Positions 2,405 to 27,600 of a stretch of DNA of 64,000 nt are shown piece after piece. Made by a program: the position numbers and the translations under genes. The notes beneath the pieces are model-generated. The model did not search any database. It was not told where the DNA came from and saw nothing but the letters and a program-made list of their open reading frames with translations. The stretch is from NCBI RefSeq assembly GCF_003704095.1, contig NW_020846941.1, positions 434,001-498,000 on the forward strand, given 5' to 3'. Position 1 is the first letter of the stretch, and each line of letters begins with the position of its first letter. The stretch comes from Pocillopora damicornis. Its lineage: Eukaryota.

Positions 2405-3630
2405 TCTAATTCTTTTTTCTATATTCCTCGTTTTACTTATTTACTTACTCGAATAGATAGTTGGCAACCTTGGGAGTCTGCTTGATAATAGGGACCTTTA
2501 GAAAATCACGACGGTGACAGCAACGAAGACGTGGCAAAACAAAAATTTAATGGACAGAACATTAACTAAGCACATGCGTTTTAAATTTTTGTTCATTTCC
2601 TAGCCGTCCTCTGCAAACCAACAACGTAAAATCGCCAAAATTTGCGTCGTCTGCGTAGGGGAACCGCGACGGCAAATTAGTTTAATTTCCATATGGAACT
2701 GAACGCTGCTTATATACGTTAGGCTGAAGTTGTAGCGCCATTAAAGACGGTAAACACATCCAGCCATTTTCGAAACTCTAACTAAAAATAGATATTCATG
2801 TTTCAATCGACGTCTTCCTTGGCGTTGCCGTCCTGACGGCTAAATGTTCCTTTATGGCCAGAATTGCGAGCCGGTATACTAAAAGTAATTTCATAAAACG
2901 GCGCTTGCGTTCGTCCTATCTAGTCCGTGTTTGTTTAGCCATTATGATAGAAATCTCGACCTGCTGACAGCCATTCGTATTACATCTTGACGTGAGTGCA
3001 GCTAAATTTTGATGCACAGTTCCCGCCGAGTTTAGACCATCGTTTAGCCGCGAGTTTCAAAACTTTCAAGATTGTTAGATCGCTACATCCCAATTTAGAT
3101 GGACTTCGTGCAGCTTAAAATGAAAATCAAAACGGATATGTTTAAAAACCACGACAGTCTTGCCCCTGGCTACGCCTCGAGCAACCCTTGTCTCGTACTC
3201 TCCAATGTTTTAATTCCTTTTTTATTATTCCTCGTTTTACTTATTTACAAACTGAAATAGATAGTTGGCTACCTTGGGAGTTTGCTGGATAATTGCCAGA
3301 ATTCAGAGCCGGTATACTCAAAATGATATCATGAAACGGCGCTTGCGTTCGTCCCGTCTAATCCGTGTCTAGCCATTATGGTAGAAATCTCGACGTGCAT
3401 ACAGCCATGCGCATTACATCTTGACGCGTGCAGCTAAATTTTTTTGCAAAGTTCTCTCCCAGTTTAAACCATCGTTTAGCCGCGAGTTTCAAAACTTTCA
3501 AGAAGTTAGAACTGCTCCATCCCAATTAAGATGGACTTTGTGCAACTTAAAATGAAAATTAAAGTAAATATGTTTAAAAGTCTTGCCCCTGGCTACGCCT
3601 CGAGCAACCCTTGTCTCGTGCTCTTCAAAC
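2405..3630 (+). repeat. Tandem duplication of a ~420-440-bp unit (copy 1 ~2405-3205 including the MITE; copy 2 ~3210-3630)
   Basis: Both copies run from ttcctcgttttacttattta..atagatagttgg through ccggtatact..aaacggcgcttgcgttcgtcc to gtcttgcccctggctacgcctcgagcaacccttgtctcgt. Confidence 0.9.
2490..2852. mobile_element. ~360-bp MITE with imperfect terminal inverted repeats, inserted into one copy of a tandem duplication
   Basis: Ends agggacctttag / ctaaatgttcctt with subterminal inverted gacggtgacagcaacgaagacg / cgtcttccttggcgttgccgtc; absent from the paralogous site at ~3290. Confidence 0.8.
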
Positions 3631-6600
3631 TTCCCGCGTGCCTCCTTGATAGACGCATACTTATCATTCACCAATTCATAAATTTGTCAAACTTTAAACA
3701 GGTGTCTATAATTGCCTGAGACATCACATTCATAACTTTAGACAAAACTAGAAAATTATTATTCGTCAAAGCCTGAAAAGTTTTAGCGATTTCAAAATAA
3801 AATCTTCTTCGTTTTATGATTTTTCACCATGACTGTAAGTTCGTATTCAGATGTTTTTCACTTGACCATTGTCCTGGATGTTACTGTCCTACGTCATTAT
3901 CCTTAACAATGCCTAATAGCCCAACACATTCTTGAGTCCTCTTAGAATAGGAACACAATCAAAGTGTTTAAAAAATTTACCATGAACTCCTACTTATGAC
4001 AGACAACCTTAGACATCTTAAAAAACAACTTCTATAAATAGTCATTTCTTGATAAACTTACTCAACAGTATTCAATATCGGAATGAAATTGACCACAAAA
4101 TTGACCTTAGGGTTAAATGCTAGCACAGACGAGAAAGAAAACTGCCACCTGGTGTTTTTATTGCTCATTTATCAAATGAAGGTCAGTTGAAAAAATTAAT
4201 GTTAGAATTAGGCGTTACCATCGCGGATGCTGCAATATTTCGCTGTGATATGTTGTAATACGAAGAGCTTTTAAAATGTCCGTCAAGTGGATTTTCATCG
4301 CTTCGAGAGAAAAAATTGTTTGCTTTGTCGTCCATTCGAAAAATACTGAAGGGAAGTCCATCAACAGCATCTAAGGTCGCTAATTGTGGCAGTCAGTCGA
4401 CAAAGGAATAAGGCTTTTTTTCCAGTATAAAACAAATTAAGATTGCAAAATGGAAAGAATACTTGCACTTGATAATTAAAGCAAATCTTATTGGCTGAGT
4501 GTTAATCTTCATGATGGCAAAAAGCTGATTTTTTTTAAGAGTGTTCGAAAACAAAAAAATAATATACTGGCACCCTAACAATTTATTGAGTGGCGACACC
4601 AGACAAAAGACATATTTTTGTATATGCTAGATAACACTTGTTGATGTCCTTAAAAAGATCATTGCTTATTCATCCTCTGAAATGTTTCGTAGATTTTATA
4701 GTTCAATTATCGTCAATACCAAGGTACCTTTGTAAATATTGACACGACATTTGAAGAAATTAACTGGAAGAGCCCTTGTGTGGTTTACCAATATCCTGAA
4801 TGACAAATTTCATATTTGTCTCAAGGTTTGATACACACTTTGATATTTTTAATGAGCCCAGGCTAGGAATATCGATGACCGGCAAGCTAAATTTAAGCAC
4901 GAAGTTTGATGAGTCTTCCCATCAAGTTTTTATTGGCTTCGGTTTTATGACTGTTTGTTAAGATGTTCATATGATTTTCTATCGCTCAGGAAAGGGGAAC
5001 GTCTACTACACCCCTGCCTGTGTGAAATTTCTCAGGGTAAGTCCACTTATAGGAATTCTGACAAACTTAACAATCGCGTTGAATGAGTTGTAAAGGACGC
5101 CCTGATAATAAATTGAGGGAAATAGTGTCTGAAATATTGCCCGGGGCCGGAGACACAGTTAGTCGGCAATGTAAACTATAGATTACAAAGTGTACGTTGA
5201 ATTCAAACACCAACGCGAGTGGGACTAAGATGAATACAGAAAAAATGTGTTTTCTTAGTCTTCATGATAGCAACGAAGCAAAAATCTCGGATGCCTTCCA
5301 ATTGTGAGATAGAAGCTGAAATTGAGCCGCAAAAAACAAACTGACCTAGACTACACACAGTTGCTACGACTGTTTACTTGTAGCGGGCAGATTTCTTTGC
5401 AGATTTTTCCTTTAGGGCAAATTTAATTGAAACATTTGTTTGACAAACGCACAAGAAGAGATTTGTCTGAAAAGTAACCACAATACGTCATAATTGTAAT
5501 GAAAAATTCAGAACCATCTGGGTCCAAAATTTTGTTGTGTACCACGACCTTTCGACGTTCCATTTTTGTCATTATCAAATAAGTCAATAAGCTAGAGATC
5601 AGATATGAATTTGGAAGAAAAAAAAAAGACAAGAAAAAAGTAAAGAAAATTGCAAGAGACATGAATACAATGGTGAAAAGACATTAATGAAATAGAGAGT
5701 AGCGGGCAGAGTCACGCATCATAAATTCCATGGGTTTTTTGATAGACTTCTCTCTTAATGATAGAATTCTCTCTTAAGTTCTTTCAAAACGCAGTTGTTG
5801 CGTTTTCTTCACGTTATTCTTGCGGTATAAAATCATTTGATGTACAATCATTCCATATACCAAGAGAACGAGACAAAATATCGACTTAACATCTTCTAGA
5901 ATGATAGGTATGTAATCGTGACGCATCTGTATTCCACTGGAGCGTTCAAAGTCAAGAGGAAACGATTTATTGGCCGACCAAACAGAAATAAAGGTGCATA
6001 AGTTTACCAAAGTTTTTAATCAGAGGTTCGAGGGATAATTTGTTCGATAAAAGCATACGGTCGCGCGCTAAGGAGCCGATACAAGATTACAAGAACGAAA
6101 GTTTAAGCTGTAATACTTATTGAGGAAGGATTAGGTAGTAGGATTAAGATAAAAAAAACAGAGGGAAAGGAGATGAATAGGGTGGAACGTTTTAGAGTTG
6201 GAAAGTGGGCAGAACTTACTTCAGGAAGATTGACCCCTAAGGCATCTGTGTTTGTTGCAGAATCTATAGGCTCTGTGGGTGGTACAATCAAAGGAGGCGG
6301 AGCTCATACTCGAAAATAGTATCTTAAAGAAATTTTATTTTCTCTTTTTCATAACTAAGACTGCAAAGTCACAGTTAGAATAAGACGATCTTTCGAGTTC
6401 GCGATCACTCTTGTAAAATTAAGTGGTGAGTCGGATTTGAAAACGTTTGTGGGTAACTTGAAGTCAAATTTTCGTGTTCATGTTTTCTCCTTGGTTCTAG
6501 AAAACTAATTCAAATTCGTCATGTTAAAATCTTTAAAGATTTGTGTTTTTTGTGCCACCAAAAAGGAAGACCTGAAACTCGTTCAAATCAAATTCGTTAA

Positions 6601-13547: not shown

Positions 13548-14682
13548 TTTTCTTTCCGATTTAAAGGTCACTGGTGATTCGTCTCACAGGAAATCAACTT
13601 GACTTCGGGGCTTTGGCTTTGTTTGGAGAATTAACAGAAGAAGGTCGCTAATAATATTTCCCTAAGAATTAGACCATCCTTTCCGATTGTCACAGATACC
13701 GTCTGAACTCAGTCTGTTTTGGAGGTGACAGAAAGGTTGGTAAATATAGCGTTTTTTAGGACCACGTGTTTGCAGTGAAAGCAACAAGCGACTGAAGTGT
13801 TTGAAAATCAGGCAGGGACCAAGGAAGGCGTCTATGGCCTCTTTTAGATCCGTAGTTTAACCTTTATGTTAATAAACACGTTTTTGTAGCCTCTTAGATT
13901 TCGAGTTTTCTCAGCTGTTCAATCAATTGATAATAAATGCCTCTGCATGGTGAGAAAACTTGGCGCGTGACAGAACATTCTTAAATGCTTCGCGGTGGTT
14001 TCCCAATTCACCTTGTTGAGCAAAAAAAAAACACGAAAAAGTTGAAAGTCAAAATAAAAATCATAATTTTTTGTTGGACAGGAGAGCACTCTTTATGTAC
14101 CATTTGGACACAAAATTAAAATAAAACAAACACATAAAGACGGACGCACTTAGAAAATCTAGAAAGTTTATTAAGAAAGTGTACTGTTGAAAATTTTTTT
14201 TCTGCTACGCTACAAATTATCTTGATCCAAGCAGACCTTATCAAATGAATTATTCGGATTATCACACAAGATAATTGGTAACTAAAGCTTCCCTCTCAAA
14301 GGCAGCATTAAAAAAAAAATTAATGATATCAAAACCTAGCAAGGAAAAGCTTAAAATATAGCTCTTTTATTGCGGCTTAGTAAGCGGTAAAAAAGAAGAA
14401 TGTATCTGGTCAGAAATGCGTCTACATTTTCCCTCGCTGAAGAATAAGTAAAAAAAATAATATCAAATTAAAAAAATAATAACAAGCTATCTGCCAATAT
14501 TTGAACTCATCACAGTGATAAAAATATTTTCTAGGAAGCAGTGATTTAAGAAATAGTAATCAATAGATCTTATATGTATGTACTGACTAAATGTTCCAAG
14601 ACTTTTTGCAAAAGGTTTCTAACTAAGACAGCAATGTTCTTCTAGTCTCGTTTTCAGCATTTTTGACGTTTGTGTTCTTTGT

Positions 14683-15953
14683 TCAATATTTGTTTAGGTC
14701 TTCTTCAAGGTAAGGATCTTGATACAATGGGTTTGCCATGGACGTTGCTCCTTCCTTGTCCGACTAGAAAGGAACGAGAAAGACACATTAGTAGTTTTCA
14801 AGGGGGAGGGTTGGGNNNNNNNNNNCCGAGTCGGAAAAAGATGCTTTCTTAACTTTTTTAATCTTTGAAATTCTTAGCTTAGATGAAGGAACTCCTCTAT
14901 TCTGGGAACAAGCTGTAGCCAAGGGTGAAAAAAAAATTGCGTCCTATTACCAGTGAACCTGTCACCATCAGTAAAAGGACATCTCTATTCAGGGGACACT
15001 TTCTCCATTCAAAAAGGGTGTCTGCTGAAAGGAGGTTCCACTGTAGGTCGAAACAGATCGAACTGTAAACGTCTCACTCGAAGGCTATATCGTAGCGATA
15101 AGTGTTGGGTGTGGGGATAAGCTTTTTCTATCCTTCTGAACTATTCCTGTATGTGTTTTTACTTTTAGATCAAATGATAATTAAATAGGGAAACCCGGTA
15201 CTTTGAAAACATAGATGTCATTTTTCAGTACCGTCAGTCCATACTTGAGGAGTGGAAGACATGTTTAACTAAAATACTCACCGCAATCCCAAACGCGTCA
15301 TCTGAGGCAAACATGTTTGTATCCACGTCACTCATGTGAAACTGATATAAAGATCACAAAAGAAGACCGATAAGAAAACTTTTCAGTTGCACACATTGCA
15401 AATAATCGCCGTGATTTACGAACTTAGTGAATCTTCCCTCTGAAGTAAAAACAAACCCTGTTACCCTCTCCTTCCCACATCATGCTGCTGCCAGCTCAAA
15501 AAGTTTCAAGGAAGCCTGCAGGGTAAATCAGACACCTCCACCCTGGTGAAAATAAATGTGACCAAGAAGGCACCGAGGTGACACCACTTGCTTGCCACCC
15601 TAGTGGCTCAGTTTCAATTCCTAGACTTTGTGTCGAATGTGGGTTGCATTTTCTTTTATTTTGTTTTGCCTTTTTTTGAGTTACACAGTTTTCCTCCCTC
15701 AAAAAAACGAAAAAGAAAAAAAAATCCAGATTTCAATAAGACATTACATCAGCGCATAGGGAGCAAGCCAGTGGATTTTCCGATACCTAGACGTGCGTGG
15801 ACTTATCCTCTTTAAAAGTCTCCATTAAGTAAAACATTTCTGTCACAAGAGTCACTTACGTCTTCCAGGGGTTGTCCTTCATTGAAAGAATCATACACAG
15901 GGTTTCCAACACCCTCAGCCATTTCGATTTCTCCTTTCTCCTTCTTGCCTTTC
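14683..15953 (-). CDS. Cytoplasmic-tail exons (15953-15860, 15341-15282, 14763-14683) with two NPxY motifs
   Basis: [31 protein letters not shown]|[20 protein letters not shown]|[26 protein letters not shown]. Confidence 0.87.
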
Positions 15954-18900
15954 CTGTGAGAGACAGCCATTATAAATGCGTCAAATTGGCAAAAGTTTAG
16001 GAGTTAAGAGCCAACTGCCTTATATCTATCAAAGCCTAGTCCACGGAATGGCCAGGAGTTTTATCACTTCCCCGAGATGGAATTTCTAGTTCATCGCAGG
16101 GTACCCTTTGTACAAATCTTTCTTCAAGTTTTCTTGACAAGCCTACTCATTTAGCAACAGTAGGGCGATCATGACTGACTTGAAGCAGTACAACGAGGGG
16201 AAAAAGGAGTTACTCTTGAAATGACGTACCTTATTTGTGAGCCTTCCTTATTAGAGGGGTCATAAAACACCGAGAACAAGGTAAGTCTCTTCCTGTTAAT
16301 CAAAGAAAAAAATTGGTCGAAATTAATTGAAAACAAACAATTTGAACCAGAGATAACTGTAGCACCTTACAAACAACCTCAGTTGTGAGAGGAGAAAGTG
16401 AGCTGTCTCAACTCAAGTAGCTACACAAGTAAAAAACAAAGACGGAAAAAAAAAACAGCGACACTTTCTACGCTTTATTCTCGTTTTCCGTTTCCTGAGA
16501 GAAAGTCTGAAAGAAGGCATGAAACACGAAAAAGACAACAACAAAAAGATTAATACTTACTTTTTACTCTTCATTATATAGTAGGCCACAACGAGGACGA
16601 TAAGGATTAACACAATTCCAGCAGCGACACCGACGCCAATGTAAACTAAAAGACAGAGACGGTCTCAAGATCAATTTTTTTGGTCAGGTTATTGGAGCCT
16701 ATCCCAACACATGAGAAGACTTATTTAAAGAGAGGATTGACACCGTGGCTGTTAAAAACATCAGCGAAGTTTCTAAACAACCATACCTCTCTGTGTAAGA
16801 AACTATAATTCAAATCATTCCAGTTTATACATAGGTAACCCCACATAAGAATTAACGTTGTTCTTACTAGATAACAATTTACTTACTTGACGATTTATTG
16901 CCCTTTTGTTTATCTGTCCTTGTTCCAGTCTTGGGCGGCGCTAAAAGTAATGAGGAAAATTTAGTGACTTGCATACAAAATAATTAATTTATATTCAATT
17001 CAAATACAACGCTACAATGTATAAGCAAGCTTACACATGACACCTACACAAAGGGTCTCAAAGGGTTTAACTGTTTGCCGTAAACGGCCAAAAAAATTAG
17101 CCATTTGGGGTATAAATTGACAAATTTTAATCATTCGTCGTAAAAAAAAGTTAACAGTCTAGAAAAGAATTAGCCGTTAGCCGTAAAGCCATCGCCCCAC
17201 TGAGACCCTCTACAAACGGTTTTGCATAGGAATGTGAAGAATTGAAGAAAGTTTTATAAAGCTCGTATAGAGCGAACTAAACCGTTTGCTTCTCTAAGTT
17301 CTCATCGCCGTCACTTGCTTACCTTTACAGTTGAATTTGATCTGATCTTCAGGGTAGTTACAAGTCTGGTTGCGAGAACAAATGACTGCTTTCTCCACGC
17401 ATTTTCCAAGGCAAGGCTGAAGTGAAGGTATCTGATTTGTACAGTTGTTTGGAATCTGATTCTCACATTTTCGTCCGTTCCTATCAAATGGACATCTGTA
17501 GCACGAGAAGAAACATGGGTTAACGAGTTAAAAAATAACACGTTAAGTTTATCGTATTCAATTAAAGCTAATTAATCATAACGACCAAGTGCTAAATTGC
17601 TGTAAATGAAAGTGAGGACCTTCTGTAGGGACAAAAAAAGTTGGCCACGCCAAGGAGGAAGCTTATGTAAGCCATGAAGTAGACACAGTTAACAAGCCTT
17701 CTGCTCCACAAGATATATATAGCTTGTATGTATATTTGTACTATAAAGTCACACAAAATTAGTTTAGTAAATTCATCGGTGGGGGAGGAGGAATGCACAC
17801 TTTCCACTTCTGAATATCGTAAAGCTCAAGAACATAATTGACTGATGACCATTCCTTCACAAACCAAAACAAAAGACTTGCTGCACACTTGACCATGCAA
17901 TACGGGTCTGCATACTTACAGACAGGCCATAAACCCTTTATCGTCCGCCTTACATTCTGCTCCTTCAGGGCAGAAAGACTTCTGGTCTTCGCAGCCTTTA
18001 AAAGGAACAGAAAAAATTGTTAGTTTTGATGGCGAAATGCCGCAGTTTCTTTTTTTTTTTTATTGCTACAATAACCTGGAAAATAGAAGTAATTTAGTAC
18101 ACCAAATTCACATCGAAACGAATCTGCTTGCTATCCTTTAATATATACAAGGTTTCATACGGTAGATCAAAGGATTTCTGAACTACTAAACGGGTTTGTT
18201 TCTTTCGGCGAGCCGCTCATTTTAGTCTAGGAGGGGTCGGGGTCGGTTTTTCAAAGGACACGATTGCACGATGGCTTTCCTGTTTCAAATAATAAAAAAT
18301 TACCATCAAACTACCGCTTTAATGTGCTATGGACACCTACTTCCACATAAGTTGCGGATCTCTGATTTATTTTTCGGACACGATATGCTCTGGTCACAGA
18401 TCTGATCTATCTTCACACATTTGCCATTTGTTCCACAATTCACCAAGCCATTTTTTTGATTGCAAGTGTCACATCGTTGGCCGACATAGTCAGAAGTGGT
18501 GCACCTGAAATAAAATTTACAAATTTAGCATCTCATTGTAACATAGTGGATATATATATCAAACGCTTATCGCTGAGGCTGAGTTTGCTTAAACCCACAA
18601 AGCCAATCCTGCCGGAGCTTAAAACGATTTCGTTTTCATGAAGCGACCATCAGTCTGGCTACTCTCCTCACCCCCACCCCCTTAACGAGATTTTTCTAGT
18701 TTTACTTTCTGCTAACTATTTTCCATTTACTTTGATGGGAGGAGAGGGGCATGGCGAGAGGTTAGTGTCTTTCCTAAGAAAGCAACACAGTGATCCGTGT
18801 GGTGTTTCTACTCACACTAAGCGACACATAACACCAAGGGACAGCGTCTCTCAAATAACTTCCCAAGAAATGCTGAATAAGATGCAAACTCTCGGCAAGC

Positions 18901-19334
18901 TTTCCGAAAAAAGGAAGATGGCATGACGCTATTCATTTTCCGATGAGGCTGATTCATCACTTACTGAAAATACCGTTAAACGTTGACCATGACTACGTTA
19001 ATGTAAACAAAAAAACACAAGCCTTACTCGCAAGTCGGATTTCCATCTACCATCTTGCAATTTCCCTTTACACAGTAATGTGATGTGCAAGCTGAAAAAA
19101 AAAAAAAAANNNNNNNNNNNNNNNNNNNNNNNNNNNNNNNNNNNNNNNNNNNNNNNNNNNNNNNNNNNNNNNNNNNNNNNNNNNNNNNNNNNNNNNNNNN
19201 NNNNNNNNNNNNNNNNNNNNNNNNNNNNNNNNNNNNNNNNNNNNNNNNNNNNNNNNNNNNNNNNNNNNNNNNNNNNNNNNNNNNNNNNNNNNNNNNNNNN
19301 NNNNNNNNNNNNNNNNNNNNNNNNNNNNNNNNNN

Positions 19335-19367
<33 letters not shown>

Positions 19368-22300
19368 AGTAAAATAAAAAACCGAAATAAACCCCGTTCC
19401 ACATGTGATCCCAAGTTTTACGCTGTATTAAGCCTCACCTTGGCAAAGCTTGACAAACTCAACGGGACTAAGGCCACACTGAACGCTTCTAGAACATATT
19501 TTTTCCTTGGTCGTGCAGAACCACTTGCCAATTTTGCACTGGATTTGATCTTTAGGACACTCACAACTGGTACAGTTCTGACATCTTGCACCGTTGTAAT
19601 TGGCATCGCATCTTTCACAAAGAAGAAACACTAATTACTTTCGAAATAAATTAAGTTGAGTAACTGAGCACTATCAATTGGCTCACAATGCAACCACATG
19701 TGATAAAGATGGCCACGGTTCGGATGGCAACTCCAGCTTTAGATTGAATCAAAGCGACCAATGGGGCCCGAAGCTAACATTACAACCACTGTGCTTCATC
19801 TGGCCATACCCTCGGTCATCGAAAAACACAAACAAAACCAAACGAACAAACAAACAAACAAACAAGAAAAGGGATTGTTGGGCGAAAACTGGCGGGAGTG
19901 ACTGGAAGAAAAACACAGTTTATTTAACTCTATCCGAATTGCTGTCATACCATACTACGTAATGAAGATACTTACACACAATCCGGACGCCCAAAGTTGT
20001 CTAGTTGACACTTTCCATTGATACAATAGCTTTCGGTACATGCTGGATACAAAGCAATTGAACGTTATAAGTATTAATTAACTATATAAAACACATTGTA
20101 AAATATCCTAAAATTCCGGGTTTAATTCGTAATCTGCAGACCTTGACATCAAAGAGCAGTCCTGTCTATAACACGCAATCTCTTCTTAAAAACAATAAAT
20201 CAACGCAACATCAGACAAAACTTTTACGAAGAAGTTACTGAGGAAAATGATCTTATTTCCCTAAACTTCTTTTAACGAAATACATCACGAAAATTGTTTC
20301 ACATAAAAGAGATAAATACCGAAATGTTTAAGGGGAGTAAATAATTAAAATGGAAAAAAAAAGTAAATAAAGAAAAGAAAAAAAACAGAATATAACAAAA
20401 GTTAGAAGGATTACAAAATGATAATCTTCAACAATTAAAATCACTTTGAGCGAGCAAACTTACCACAATGTGATTCATCACTTCCATCCGTACAATCAGA
20501 CTTGCCGTTACATTGCAGAGTCTTGTTTAGGCATTTTCCATCAGCTGGGCAATAAATCTGGAAATGACCACAATTACGGTTGGCTGCAAAAACAAGTAAA
20601 GCAGACTTTAGAAATCGTCATAAAAACGTAACTAAATTCTACCAAAGAATTACGCCATCATTCCTTCAATTATTACTAATTATTGACCGAAGTGGAGGTA
20701 AACACACAATACTTTCGCAGAAACTGAAGCGAATAACTGTTTTAGTATATACCGTACGGAAACCAAAAATTAGTTCATATCTGTCAATATACAGAAAAAA
20801 GTCGGAATTCAAAATCTTGACGTGTGATTTTGTCTCTACGTTTCGGAAGTGAATAGTACTTCCTGATCACTTCCAAACAGGCGAATCAGCGCGCGCGAAA
20901 GGCACTATTCACCTGTGTGGTATATGCCAAAATATTTCCTAGTTCAAAAGAAGGTCAAAGTGAGCAAGAGAAAAACAAACAATTTAACAAACCAAAAAAC
21001 AACCACAGAAATTAAAACTTGACAAAATATTACCACAGTTAGCTTCTGCTCCCTCGTCTGAGTGGTCTTTACAATCTGGGTATTGGTCACAAACGAAGGC
21101 CGACTTGATACATTCTCCACTCTTACATCGGAATTCGTCACGCTTACACTGACCTGGTGGCGCTGAAAATAATGGAATAAAAGCGGTGAGACTTTGCCAA
21201 ACGGTATTTGTAAATAACAGTTGACGGTCTTGTAGTGAGATTTCAGGTTTGCTAGATATTAAGCCAGATTTAAAATGGAAATTGTGGTTCAAGTAACTAT
21301 GGTCAGAAAGAGTTTCTCTTGGAAGCCCATCTTTTTCCTATCTACATGAATTTGAAAAGGGTATTGCAAATATCGCAAATATTTACGTCAAACAGCCTCA
21401 CAATTTCTGTCACAGTTCCACTTCAAGCAATTGAAAAGGACTAAAAGTAGCAGAGTACGCGCATGCCCTGCCTATCGTCATGACTATACTGATAAGGTAG
21501 CGTTTTAAATGTGCAGGAGAAGTCAACGAAAGCGATTGTATGTAAAGAAATCATTGATATCCTTTTTAAGATTTATTTAAGAAAGTAGTCAAAGACGCTC
21601 AGTGGGTCCCATCAACGTAAGAGGCCCTACTTCAAGAAAGGGGCACAAGGTAGAAGTACCCCAAAACGTTTTTTAACGTACTTGTAGAGTATAGTCAGTG
21701 AAAAACAAAGAGAATGACAAGTGAGACAGTAGCAGGCTACATGGCTTGTTGTCAATTAATTTGAAGAAATCCTGCATAACCGCGTTTTTAGAATAAATCA
21801 TGCAAAACATCTTTGGATTAGTGTAGACGGAGCTAAAACGATACTATATAGTCATAACTGAATCACACTCACTATGTGTGCAGGATGAAAAGGTGATGTC
21901 ATCAATCGCTATGTCACTAGCCGTGGTTGGACCACGCTCTGCCTCAAAACTGACGGTGAAAGCTGTCTTGTTCTTAATCAGTTCCGTGAAGTTGTGCACA
22001 CCTCTATACCAGCCGTCACCCTGGTTTCCAGCCTTTTTCCAAACCTAAAAGGAGATATCATAGGAAGATAATGTTTAAAATGGTCAGTAATATAACTTGC
22101 TTGTTTGTACACCATTATCAACAACAAAAACAACAACAACAACATCGTTAGAAAAGGAGCTGCCCTGTTTAACTTTATTTTCGCCGTAAGGCAAAAAGCA
22201 GTTAAAACGGGCAATGATGCAAGTGATGAACCCTCTACACACTAACATTAGTATGTATAATCTCCATACTGTTCTCTAAAGAAAATTGTGAATTACCTCG

Positions 22301-24648
22301 GTACGTTGTCCATCTTTGGGTTCAACAAACACACGCAACACACCCATGCCAGTGCCGTACATGTGGTAGAAGAAACTCATCCGGCAGTAAGACTCTGATA
22401 CACTTGTGAAGGTGTAAGAGACCCTGGCTGTGTCTTTGGGCTGCGCTTGAGATGAATCCATGTAAAGATAGTACCCTACACGGAGCAACAAATAGAAACT
22501 TAGATGGGCCCCATGACAAATCAATCAAACCTAGGATTCCGTGCCTCGATGCTCTATCACTAAGCCACAGAGACAATACGCTGAGTACAAACAAAATAAG
22601 CGAGCTCTTCATTGAAGCCATAGAAGTACACTAAGCTTGCCATAGCTGAATAATAACTCAAATGGGCTAAACAAACACCGTTATATAGGGAGAGTAAACA
22701 AAAACTAAATTGCTTGCCAAGCATCCACTTTGTTCATTTTCCACGGGGATTGTAAGAGGNNNNNNNNNNGAAGACGACTAACGGCAATGGCTATGAATCA
22801 GAATCATCCTCTTGTTATTTATGATCCACCACCAAGGATTCTCCTCTTCATGCCCCTCTCGTTCTTCCCGCATATCAAACACTCCCATAGTAAAAGATTA
22901 CCGCTCTCGCCAGCTTTCCTCAGCTCAGCGAATTCAAGATGGCGATCATAGGTTTAACGAAAGACAATTAAGCGATATGCTTTAACTTAAGGTTGTTAAT
23001 TAAAAGCATTCTGAAATCTGGAATCTTACCAGTCGCATCCTGTTTAGTGTGATCATAGCGTGGACCGGTGTTTCTGTTTTGTGTCTCTCCCTGGTTTCGT
23101 GTAAAACTTGCAGGGGCAGTTGAATCAACAATCCAATCACACATGCCTCTTTCGAAGTCACATGAACCTTTAGTTGGTGCATTCGTCGGGGGGTAGGTAG
23201 GAGTGGTACTGTCGTCTTTGCAGCACATGATGCCGCCTGAATTACTTACTGACATGAACGAACAACCCTCTAGATTGCCAGCAGCGGGCGTGTACATCGT
23301 CTGGCGTTTGAAAACACCTTATGAAGGAAATGAAAATAAGATTTTTAAGTCAAGCATTAGTTTGAAATGGACTGACATCCCGTCTTTGATGGTTTTTCAC
23401 ACTACCAAAAGCTCTATAAGCTCCGACAATAAAGCTTGACCTACCTGAGTCACAGGAGTCTGGACCTTTGCAACCAAAGCCGCAGCAAAGCGGTTCTGAG
23501 CACGAGTCGTGGTATTGACCACAACCATAATCTAATCCAGTTTTTACTCGCTTGCAGCCGTCGCCTCCTCCACTGTTGGTCTTACAGTGGTTAATACCGG
23601 CGCTGAAATGACCATAACCAGCTCTCTGGCAATCCACACCGTTCGTCTACACAATGAAGGGATCAGATTTTAGTAAAAACAAGCTTCTGCAAACTTCTGG
23701 TTCAAATATAGTAGGAATTTCCTAGCTCTTTCATCGACTGCTCTTTGAAACTAAAACAAATGACTTAATCAAGGGCATATAACTACACTAGTTGTTCGCT
23801 TTTGAAACAAACTATTACAAAAGGATTGCCCTTGTGATCACATCTTAATACTAGCCAGGACAAGTTAAGAACAGGTTCTATATCAAACGCATGCCCTGTG
23901 GAGTTACAATCATTAGTTAGAGAACGTCCATGAAATGGCTCACATTCCGACAGGATTCTCACGTGTACCTTTAAATTTGCGCTGAGAAATTTTCATGCGG
24001 TTTCATAGTTGTGATTATCCTGTATTTTAACATGCATTGACGCTGTCATTTGACAGAAAAATCATTTGTAGCTTTTCTGTTTAGAAAGGAGCAACTTAAG
24101 TCTTACTCGGTTGACAATTTCGAAAACGTCTCCAAAAGTTCCACAGACATGCCAACCATCTTCGCACAGGTCAGCAGGTTGGCCACACCAACGACCCCAA
24201 CGCCCGACGTCATCTCCGCACGTGGCACCAACATAGGAAGGCTTGGCTCGGAGGTTTTTACGTCCCCACCAATAACCTTTGCAGCCGGCCACAGTCGGAT
24301 GCTGAAAGAAACCTTCTCGTCCACCGTCAGAACAACCCGTTTTCAGGGCTTTGTCGCCGTATCTCAAGGCCTGGTCGTCTGTGAAGGAACATTGACCCTG
24401 CAAAGAATTTCAGGTACTACTTTAAAGAAGGAGTTTGTAAGACAGGGATTCGGTGACGATTTCTCCATTCACTTCAGTATAGGCAGGAGTAAGTTTAATA
24501 CTTTTTTTAAAGTATTTAAGGTCTCCGAGCGCTTAACTGGCGAAGCTTTGCGCCAGTCTAGGTATTTTTTCAAGTCGCCCACCAATAAAAATCACCCAAA
24601 GATTTCCAAAACAATGCGTCATGGAGAGCAGAAATAATGAAAGAATAA

Positions 24649-24693
<45 letters not shown>

Positions 24694-27600
24694 CAACAGC
24701 ATTAATAAATGAAAAATAATAAAACTAACAATGATAACTATAATAGGAATAATAATAATAATAATTATTTTTATTATAGTTATAATAATCATAATTAAAA
24801 TAATAGCTATAATAATAATAATAACAACAATAACAACAACAACAACAATTATAATAACAATAATAATAATAATAATAATGTGCCATGCGTCTGTAGGAGC
24901 ACCTTACCACGGTTACTATAATAATTGCTATCATTATAATAATAATAATAATACAGCGTGATTGTACCTGAAATTTAATGTCGTCTATGGCAATGTCTCC
25001 TTGGTAACCATCTCCTCGTGTGGCAGTGATGTGAATTCGGAAGGCGTAATCACTCTTCACCGTTGCTTCACCTTTGATCCAATTGTCAGCCTGGTGGCCA
25101 GTCTTGTTCAATATCACCTTCATTTCATCTCCACTGTTCACGAAGATTGTAAGTGAGCCTGTGTCAGGGCCGGACATGTGGTAGTAAAACGTCATCTTGC
25201 AGTTTGAGGTAGGCATCATGTAAGGACCCTCCAAGATGGCAACAGCGCCCTTGACATACCAACTGGCCTCAATATGCATGTAATAACCTACATGTAGACA
25301 AAACGCGTCACTGATTCAGAGAAATGTTCTTCTTTGCCTTTCATCCTTACAATACATAACAGTGAGGGTCCACAGTGCTTCATTATAAGAACAGTTTAGA
25401 GTCAAGGACAAAAGTAAACAATTAACTCCCTACCGCTTGATGTTCCTGTGGTGTGATCAACCGCTGGACCGGTGTTCGTACTGGAAGTTTTGCCCTCTCT
25501 AAGATACCACGGCATATCGTTGACGGCTGTGTTGTTCCAGTGGCAAGTACCGTGCTCAAAATTACAGTCACCGGATAGCGGACCTATATGAAAATATATA
25601 AAATAATATTATTATCTGAACACCAATGAAATACCAAGTGAGCTTTAGCGGGAAAACATGATATCTTCACTCACAACGATAACATGTTATCTTCACACGT
25701 GAGAAGATTCTTGTTGCTAAGGTTACATCTAAAAATCGCGCCTTTCGATGTGATTTAGTATTTCATTGATGTTTGTATAATAAATAGAATAGTACACGGT
25801 CGCGGGGCGATATGAACTTTCTCTTCACGTGTGAGCAAAGCGAACGCGTGAAATATTTTTCAACACTCAAAGAGAAGTTTCGTATCTCCGCGCGACCTTG
25901 TAATATCCTCTTTGTAACCTCCTATAGGTTTGGATCACATGTGGCTTCAGCCTGATATGCGAGCTTGGCCTTTACGTAATACGCCATGTTATTTTTACAT
26001 ATTTTAAAGATGGGATTGGAAAGAGGGATGAGTCTACTTTTTCCCCCCAACCTTTTCTCCTTTCTGTATAGGACAAAACGCCGCAATCTTGAGACAGACG
26101 AAACACTGGTTGTCCATCTGCCCTTCAATGTTTTAATTTCTTCACAATGAAATAGGAGGCTTCGTGAAATACTTACCAAGCGTTGGACGGGTGAACGGGT
26201 TATCATTACACTTTGGAAAGGTTTCTGTGCATGGTGTTATCTCATCATTAAACTTGCAGTTGTGGAACTCTATGTCATCTATTGCTATGTCTCCATTGTA
26301 GTCCCATCCTCTGACCCCACTGATCACAATTCTAACTGTCTTATTGGCCGTCTCCGGATTGTAGATACTCACCATGCCATGTTGCCACTTGTTACCACGG
26401 TTACCCCACTCATACCACAAGTCGACCTGTTTGTGATCTATGGGAAGAAATGTTTTCAATTATTCTGTCATTCAAGAGATTCAAACCACCATTTAACGTT
26501 GTAGAACATCTTTTAAAATGATAATCAAAACCTCAAATTAACCCTTCAACTCTCATAAGTGATTTAACAATAGGAAAACAATATCAAGCAGATAAGTAAA
26601 GTGATGCGAATAGAGAAAATGTAAACTAGGGGATTAGAAGTCGACTCAATACCAAATTCTCCGAACTATCGTCAAAAGAATTGTATGAAGGACAGTGAGG
26701 AGAATTGCTAATGAAACCTGGGTGTATAAGAATTATTTATAAGAGACAAGAGAAAGACAAGCATTACTCTTTCCCATTCCTTTTGCGGCTCCCCAGCTCA
26801 AAACTCCTACTACGCAGGCCTTTAGTTTGTCCGAGCGTTTCCACTATCACGAAGCGATACTACTACCTTGTTTTAACGGGATGAAAGGAGTTTTAAAGTC
26901 TGACCTAACAAATAAGAGTGCTTCATATCAACTACAAAATCCCAGCCACATAGAGTTTGTCACTTACCAATCAAATTGTTAGGATCGGAAAACGCATAGG
27001 CGACAATCCACAGCGAGCCCACCCCAGAGCCATACATATGATACCAGAAAGACATGTAACACTTTCGGTCAACAACAAGCAGCCTGCTCTCCAAATCGGC
27101 ATGGTACCAGCCCGATGACGAGACACTGGAGGCATCAATGTAAAGATAGCGCCCTAAAATGCTTTTTTTGGTGTGGTCGTAAGAAGGACCTGTATTCTGG
27201 CTAGCAGTTTCCCCACGTCCAACAATCCAATCCATCTGGTCGTGGCCATCCTGCTCATTAGACCAACAGCTGACGCATTTCTCAAAATCGTCATCCATGA
27301 TGGACGGTTTGGGTTTTGGTGTTGGAGCTGGAGTCGGCCCAAGATTTCCGCACTTGACGAACTGGATATTATCCACGGCGATGTCTGATTGATAGCCGGC
27401 GCCCCGTATAGCTTCAAAGACAACTGAAAATTGCACTTTACTCGGAATATTGGCATAATCGCAGCGCCATTTGTTGCCCTGGTCACCACTCTTCGACCAG
27501 ATTTTCTTTTGGGTCATGTCAGGTTTGGCATCATTAGTAAAGCGCTGGTAAACATTTAGGGTTCCCATGTCTTTTCCATTCATATTGTAACAGAAGAAAA

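Follow-up and report, generated by a model that had tools for sequence, protein, structure and literature searches.

A cysteine-rich module of an unnamed domain family in a giant MAM/LDLa protein of Pocillopora damicornis, with homologues in sponges and Myxococcota and a probable, distantly lectin-like architecture

The window analyzed here, a stretch of 64,000 nucleotides from the coral Pocillopora damicornis (NCBI RefSeq assembly GCF_003704095.1, contig NW_020846941.1, positions 434,001 to 498,000 of the forward strand), carries exons of a giant protein composed of repeated MAM and LDLa domains. Embedded in this protein is a module of about 170–175 amino acids (aa) with 18 Cys residues, encoded by three GT..AG-bounded exons on the minus strand. 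The best overall explanation, to which we assign a probability of about 0.6, is that it constitutes a disulfide-locked, distantly lectin-like binding module of an unnamed family. The three exons would yield a single autonomous extracellular domain of about 170 aa, locked by nine predicted disulfides. In early-branching animals, one copy of it is flanked by the last MAM domains of a giant, predicted single-pass receptor of the MAM/LDLa type that carries an NPxY tail. The module would provide this otherwise repetitive ectodomain with a single site, close to the membrane, for the specific recognition of a glycan or of a matrix/protein ligand, the host being either an endocytic-type or a matrix-shed MAM/LDLa protein.

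Translation of the minus strand from 24500 to 23100 reproduced all three peptides that the initial annotation had assigned to three phase-consistent exons, and the corresponding splice junctions were confirmed in RNA. Its description of an even number of Cys residues, 18 in total with two CC pairs, was also borne out by counting in the translation: from GC.DG at the start of the module (24337) to CC.D at its end (23214), exon 1 contributes six, exon 2 nine and exon 3 three, with exon 2 ending at 23445 in phase 1. The true start of exon 1 lies 60 nt upstream of the position originally proposed, and the additional sequence encodes a 20-aa linker and one further Cys. In alignment A1, the three exons tile the homologues P0012, P0010 and P0044 end to end, with neither overlap nor gap and with the Cys columns kept; because these homologues are encoded by single open reading frames (ORFs), the tiling validates the joining of the exons. 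Furthermore, a third eukaryotic contig (L003/L004) encodes the entire module in one exon (P0012, 210 aa) located between MAM exons.

Transcription of the spliced module was assessed in Logan contigs from four RNA-seq runs, each belonging to a different study, the runs comprising poly-A metatranscriptomes and coral 'metagenome' transcriptomes. Both joints, 24107/23646 and 23445/23317, were present in the contigs of all four runs, in GT..AG context on the minus strand, and the inclusion of the module exons in transcripts, which had been left to such a check, was thereby established. The RNA contigs connect exon 1 to the preceding MAM exon, their loose end reading ...DIAIDDIKF, and extend downstream to 23029; one of them spans 17,330 nt and carries the module at its positions 14,609–15,393. 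Read depth ranged from 73 to 797 on the exons versus 2 to 8 on the intron. The low-depth contigs (2–8) cover 23649–23976, a part of the 460-nt intron, in 4/4 runs, and they probably represent unspliced precursor and not an alternative exon, since this segment contains stops in all three frames.

The module is under purifying selection. Its transcript variants comprise four synonymous and three conservative changes, none of them at a Cys. L002, an orthologous eukaryotic contig of 1.5 Mb belonging to an ENA assembly, contains the three exons in the same order, with 78, 88 and 68% identity and all Cys residues retained, and comparison across the three exons gave a dN/dS of 0.09 at a dS of 1.5, a conservation far exceeding chance. 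In the 234-Mb genome, exon 1 and a profile built from bacterial sequences only each produced one match, located at exon 1, in agreement with the previous proposal that the module is single-copy.

When exon 1 alone was searched with HMMER against 1.84 billion proteins, 232 cluster representatives were retrieved at E ≤ 1e-3, including 35 at E ≤ 1e-10; details of the homologues refer to the best 150 of these 232 matches. The bacterial-only profile recognized exon 1 of the window at E 2.1e-24. The whole unit, running from GC.DG.RE.F to G-[VI]-L-C-C-x-D with a uniform length of 160–180 aa, was found in more than 100 of the 232 representatives. The number of Cys residues per unit is even (18 in 65/120 units, and 16, 14 or 12 in the others), and several Cys columns are gained or lost in pairs, a co-variation consistent with disulfide partners. 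The family consensus reads GCADG.REGF...AGC..W...PAD.CA.GWHVC...EPVCCG...GVLCC.D, and its near-invariant non-Cys residues (G, D, R-E, W, G, D and W-H) are all retained in the window module. The GC.DG.REGF pattern that the initial annotation had connected with myxobacterial proteins matches this consensus, and the bacterial relatives indeed belong almost exclusively to Myxococcota. Judged by its sequence, the module is a member of a large, unnamed and real domain family.

No named family was recovered for this module in the libraries searched. In Pfam, the three exons had no match at E ≤ 10 and ten full-length homologues returned nothing relevant at E ≤ 1; in NCBIfam, ten bacterial and eukaryotic homologues matched 0 families at E ≤ 1, models such as the Myxococcus cysteine-rich repeat and other Cys-rich ones being included. 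PDB sequences, searched with exons 1 and 2 and with a 43-sequence family profile, offered nothing beyond one chance match (E 0.96). The suggestion that the module is unnamed thus held against these searches of exons and full-length homologues. The ESM Atlas contained no named cluster for it, and two unnamed Myxococcota clusters at 0.85 and 0.83 were taken as a lead only. A word-index search with exon 1 returned solely the ORF of the ortholog, as expected from the length window of that search.

The bacterial branch of the family is extensive. A scan of one genome per prokaryotic species identified at least 539 loci encoding relatives, and the best 80 of these at least 539 loci are almost all from Myxococcota (Enhygromyxa, Plesiocystis, Nannocystis, Kofleriaceae, Haliangiales, Polyangiales and Sandaracinaceae). 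Among 151 evenly drawn Myxococcota genomes, 28 encode the module, often in multiple copies and within very long open frames. Small proteins made up of a signal peptide with lipobox, a linker and the module account for many of the bacterial members. In the ten long members considered, the module is C-terminal and is accompanied by a VWD domain in 6/10 and by an M4 or S8 peptidase or a sulfatase in the others. These secreted lipoproteins and VWD-peptidase proteins, e.g. of Enhygromyxa salina, Plesiocystis pacifica and Nannocystis, are true homologues of the coral module, with 45–58% identity to its exon 1 and with the pattern from GC.DG.RE.F to G-V-L-C-C-x-D, the length and the Cys columns in common. 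They differ in being prokaryotic and stand-alone or C-terminal, in lacking a MAM/LDLa context, and in being annotated as 'lipoprotein family protein' or hypothetical.

Two further features of the bacterial members were observed. The VWD fusions recur (P0055, P0056, P0061, P0064, P0066 and P0069), and in P0064 and P0056 the module is situated close behind the VWD domain, where animal mucins and VWF have their C8/TIL domains. In Nannocystaceae and related Myxococcota, a gene for a module lipoprotein lies in a conserved neighborhood (L005–L084; e.g. L045:3828-4712, L055:1870-2520 and L058:9114-10505), with genes for TatA/B and TatC upstream (TatC assigned by eye only) and for a 233-aa unknown membrane protein and an FHA-sigma-54 activator downstream. 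We take this arrangement as lineage synteny without an evident functional link.

Few eukaryotic matches bear taxon labels. The named ones comprise, besides one protist transcript treated below, sponge sequences entered as 'MAM and LDL-receptor class A domain-containing protein 2-like' (Corticium candelabrum and Oscarella lobularis). In the Oscarella proteins of 4,327 aa and 4,875 aa, the module is placed behind a long MAM/LDLa array and ahead of the last MAM domains, a transmembrane (TM) helix and a GNPVY tail; the membrane-proximal position, as predicted from these architectures, is common to the coral and sponge giants. When the module region of the 4,327-aa protein served as query in a word-index search, 242 candidates were obtained, 0 of which reached E ≤ 1e-3, a result that is uninformative on other giant animal proteins. 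The 4,875-aa protein (P0169) contains two copies of the module, at residues about 3448–3616 and 4202–4380. Since these copies fall in different sponge sub-clades, the duplication would either be older than the split between Oscarella and Corticium or reflect exon shuffling. A 358-aa protein from the transcriptome of Rhodelphis limneticus (P0135), in which a calcium-binding EGF-like domain is combined with the module, groups with a bacterial sequence with a support of 90 in the Shimodaira–Hasegawa-like approximate likelihood ratio test (SH-aLRT); this could reflect an independent acquisition or prey contamination. With members in Myxococcota, coral, homoscleromorph sponges and one protist transcriptome, the family has the patchy bacteria-invertebrate distribution that had been anticipated.

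The relationships within the family were examined in an unrooted maximum-likelihood tree of 111 modules, in which exon 1 alone stands for the window and from which nine near-duplicate cluster members were omitted. The coral and sponge modules form one clade (SH-aLRT 97) within a set of 23 rows that also contains bacterial sequences, a topology that shows a single origin of the animal copies. As the tree is unrooted, placing the animal clade 'inside' bacteria depends on the root, and no donor is claimed. That genes can pass between myxobacteria and early animals has a precedent in the GH23 g-type lysozymes shared by metazoans and myxobacteria (bioRxiv 10.1101/2024.10.06.616844); these constitute an unrelated protein family, for which, unlike for the module, a recent direction from animal to myxobacterium has been proposed. 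A second deep subfamily of 23 rows (P0020, P0025, P0049, P0097, P0118, P0143, P0146 and others) is marked by a Cys pair at a shifted position. Part of this subfamily is found in proteins whose composition is eukaryote-like, with furin/TNFR-like Cys repeats and Gly-rich domains, and tandem copies are frequent.

To the structure of the module, AlphaFold2 models were applied from both branches of the family. The model of P0012, obtained with alignment A1, had a predicted local distance difference test score (pLDDT) of 89.6 and a predicted template modeling score of 0.86, and that of the bacterial P0044, obtained with alignment A2, a pLDDT of 84.5. Both are loop-rich, with few and short strands and helices. 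The top 50 Foldseek rows of both models consist almost entirely of C-type-lectin-like or Link domains, an aerolysin chain being present in both lists as well, and the corresponding alignments comprise about 95–130 residues at about 4–5 Å and cover most of the target, with about 100 of about 120 residues superposed at about 4 Å. The N-terminal strand region at GC.DG and the C-terminal strand ending in CC form the two ends of every structural alignment. The loose C-type-lectin likeness noted in the initial annotation is consistent with these top matches; however, the proposal that GWHVC marks the start of the fold did not stand, as the alignments begin about 60 residues earlier. We regard it as likely from these models that the topological resemblance to C-type-lectin-like proteins is distant but real, short of membership.

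Compared with the C-type lectin-like superfamily (Lectin_C, PF00059, including the Link modules), the module is alike in being extracellular and disulfide-stabilized, in its predicted alpha/beta core with long loops and in the placement of its N- and C-terminal strands at the alignment ends. It differs in lacking sequence-profile similarity, in scoring far under family level and in its dimensions, 170 aa with 18 Cys versus about 120 aa with 4–6 Cys for a C-type lectin-like domain (CTLD). Several negative results weigh against a lectin-like binding module. Foldseek found no match in the PDB at E ≤ 1e-3, the best E values for the two models being 1.8 and 0.2; the Lectin_C profile matched neither the exons at E ≤ 10 nor ten full-length homologues at E ≤ 1; no EPN/QPD, WND or WIGL motif is visible in the window module or in the family consensus; and no informative operon was found in the bacterial gene neighborhood. 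The absence of the Lectin_C profile and of the sugar-binding motifs is the reason for which we propose a resemblance and not membership. The Ca2+/sugar-binding and WIGL motifs are missing from many non-lectin CTLDs as well. A possible alternative, which we consider distinctly less probable, is a new fold whose C-type-lectin likeness amounts to a shared loop-rich alpha/beta arrangement and which might still bind, without structural precedent. However, two independent models, one coral-type and one bacterial, gave with each of two aligners nearly pure C-type-lectin-like/Link lists over most of the target, and such lists would be very unlikely to arise from random resemblance.

Regarding function, the binding of a glycan or of a matrix/protein ligand near the membrane is somewhat favored, and it is what we infer from the fold class, the disulfide content and the domain partners. 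A recognition module would be the simplest explanation because the bacterial form can make up a whole lipoprotein, because it is fused to secreted enzymes and VWD domains, and because of the nine predicted disulfides, the invariant polar and aromatic residues and the single conserved position in the receptor. The module could instead be a rigid spacer or a self-association (dimerization) element that sets the membrane-proximal geometry of the ectodomain and has no ligand of its own. Nine predicted disulfides in 170 aa would indeed make a very rigid body, and its position beside the last MAM domains and the membrane is conserved in coral and sponge; nevertheless, this role appears unlikely, given that in bacteria the module is the entire mature lipoprotein or is attached to enzymes (proteases, sulfatase), a pattern typical of targeting or binding modules, and that the invariant non-Cys polar residues (D, R, E, W, W/H) suggest a functional site. 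The same residues have raised the idea of a small catalytic or metal-dependent extracellular domain using the invariant Asp, Arg-Glu, Trp and His, since D, R-E and W are invariant and W-H near-invariant in bacteria and animals, and the one sulfatase fusion is reminiscent of the lectin-fold formylglycine-generating enzyme (FGE). This we hold to be quite improbable: no enzyme family, FGE-sulfatase included, was matched in the profile searches, FGE is absent from both top-50 structure lists, and the main fusion partners are VWD domains and proteases, next to which the module looks accessory. An FGE/sulfatase-modifying identity was accordingly rejected, with neither a profile nor a structure match. 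Finally, an artefact through contamination of the assembly with bacterial DNA, or through a chance ORF, has a negligible probability even though the nearest named non-animal relatives are bacterial. Contamination is ruled out by the two GT..AG introns that interrupt the module and by the poly-A RNA of four studies, which shows in-frame splicing to MAM exons; moreover, the base composition of the module is like that of its flanks and the ortholog contig conserves the module with its introns.

Outside the module, the host is predicted to be a giant protein of the MAM/LDLa type that crosses the membrane once and has an NPxY tail, because Pfam identifies MAM and LDLa domains in the flanking exons and these are followed by a predicted helix with KSKK and an ORF with an NPVY tail (Table 1). 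The repeated MAM and LDLa domains of a MALRD-like receptor were found by Pfam on the flanking exons, the transcript contig being 17.3 kb long, and sequence prediction yields the single TM helix and the NPxY motif (a hydrophobic 21-mer at about 16661; NPVY in the ORF 15812–15970). Downstream of the module there is one MAM domain (three exons), one LDLa repeat and a Cys-rich stretch, then the predicted TM helix and the ORF of the NPVY tail. With these three elements separating the module from the helix, its earlier description as close to the membrane is upheld. The Cys-rich stretch and the helix are themselves separated by an assembly gap.

Table 1. Features of the module and of its host gene in the window, listed in the direction of transcription
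Feature	Position	Strand	Basis and remarks
Preceding MAM domain exon, end ...DIAIDDIKF	24956..25279	minus	Pfam MAM E 1.5e-19; reached by the loose end of the RNA contigs
Module exon 1: 20-aa linker after the preceding MAM, then N-terminal 77 aa, GC.DG.REGF ... GWHVC (module proper from 24337)	24107..24397	minus	Translation and RNA joint
Intron 1, 460 nt, GT..AG, phase 0	23647..24106	minus	Skipped in RNA contigs of 4 runs; depth 2-8 only
Module exon 2, central 67 aa, 9 Cys, ..NHC.. EPLCCG..	23445..23646	minus	Translation; RNA joints on both sides; 88% identity to ortholog L002
Intron 2, 127 nt, GT..AG, phase 1	23318..23444	minus	RNA joint 23445/23317 after +2 shift
Module part of exon 3, last 35 aa, end G-G-I-M-C-C-K-D	23214..23317	minus	Translation; collinear with single-ORF homologues P0012 and P0010
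Remainder of exon 3: Thr/Pro linker and start of next MAM (C-D-F-E...)	23029..23213	minus	Pfam MAM positions 1-40; RNA contig reaches 23029
Further exons of the following MAM	21847..22524	minus	Pfam MAM E 2e-11 and 1.5e-4
LDL-receptor class A repeat	21035..21151	minus	Pfam Ldl_recept_a E 2.8e-13
Predicted TM helix, then K-S-K-K	about 16599..16661	minus	Hydropathy scan, mean Kyte-Doolittle 2.5 over 21 aa; TM like that of the Oscarella homologues
NPVY (NPxY-type) motif, predicted cytoplasmic tail	15893..15904	minus	ORF 15812-15970; G-x-G-N-P-V-Y tail also in the Oscarella proteins and P0008

Two peculiarities of the surrounding sequence were recorded. N runs are present in the 3' part of the gene at window positions 19100–19400 and 22760–22770 (345 N in the window), between the Cys-rich/EGF-like exon and the TM exon. 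An AT-rich simple repeat of the ATT/ATA type occupies 24619–24961 in the intron directly upstream of exon 1; it yields poly-Ile and poly-Tyr ORFs on both strands, and its segment 24634–24700 was excluded from RNA read mapping as a repeat.

The architecture of the host, with MAM and LDLa repeats, a predicted single TM helix and an NPxY tail, resembles that of the MAM/LDLa proteins, which include vertebrate MALRD1 and the coral skeletal-matrix 'MAM and LDL-receptor' proteins 1 and 2. The Oscarella and Corticium '...protein 2-like' sequences share, in addition, the module itself and its membrane-proximal location. In contrast, the name of the MAM/LDLa protein family refers to the MAM and LDLa repeats alone, and among published MAM/LDLa architectures we found none that includes the module. 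MAM/LDL-receptor proteins are among the skeletal organic matrix proteins of Acropora (PMC4043741), to which the coral host is likened by type. A more far-reaching scenario, to be taken as speculative and on balance doubtful, would combine these elements: a disulfide-knotted recognition domain of new structure, passed in a single exchange between Myxococcota and the animal stem, would have been fixed membrane-proximally in an ancestral MAM/LDLa endocytic receptor before the sponge-cnidarian divergence, possibly lost in other animals, and would serve as a binding site in the coral skeletal matrix.

Unnamed and without a solved relative in the libraries searched, the module is nonetheless probably yet another disulfide-rich extracellular module of lectin-like architecture, as the models suggest. 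The analysis defines a sizeable unnamed domain family, with bacterial members numbering in the hundreds and one conserved copy in the giant receptors of coral and sponge, and a profile of this family would provide an annotation for many myxobacterial lipoproteins and VWD-protease proteins now listed as 'hypothetical'. The sharing of the module between Myxococcota and early animals offers a testable case in the discussion of whether predatory, multicellular-type bacteria and early metazoans exchanged genes. Moreover, such a profile would fill an unannotated gap in a protein family studied as components of the coral skeletal matrix, and the module, as the sole non-repetitive one of a 5,000-aa ectodomain, is the obvious place in which to seek ligand specificity.
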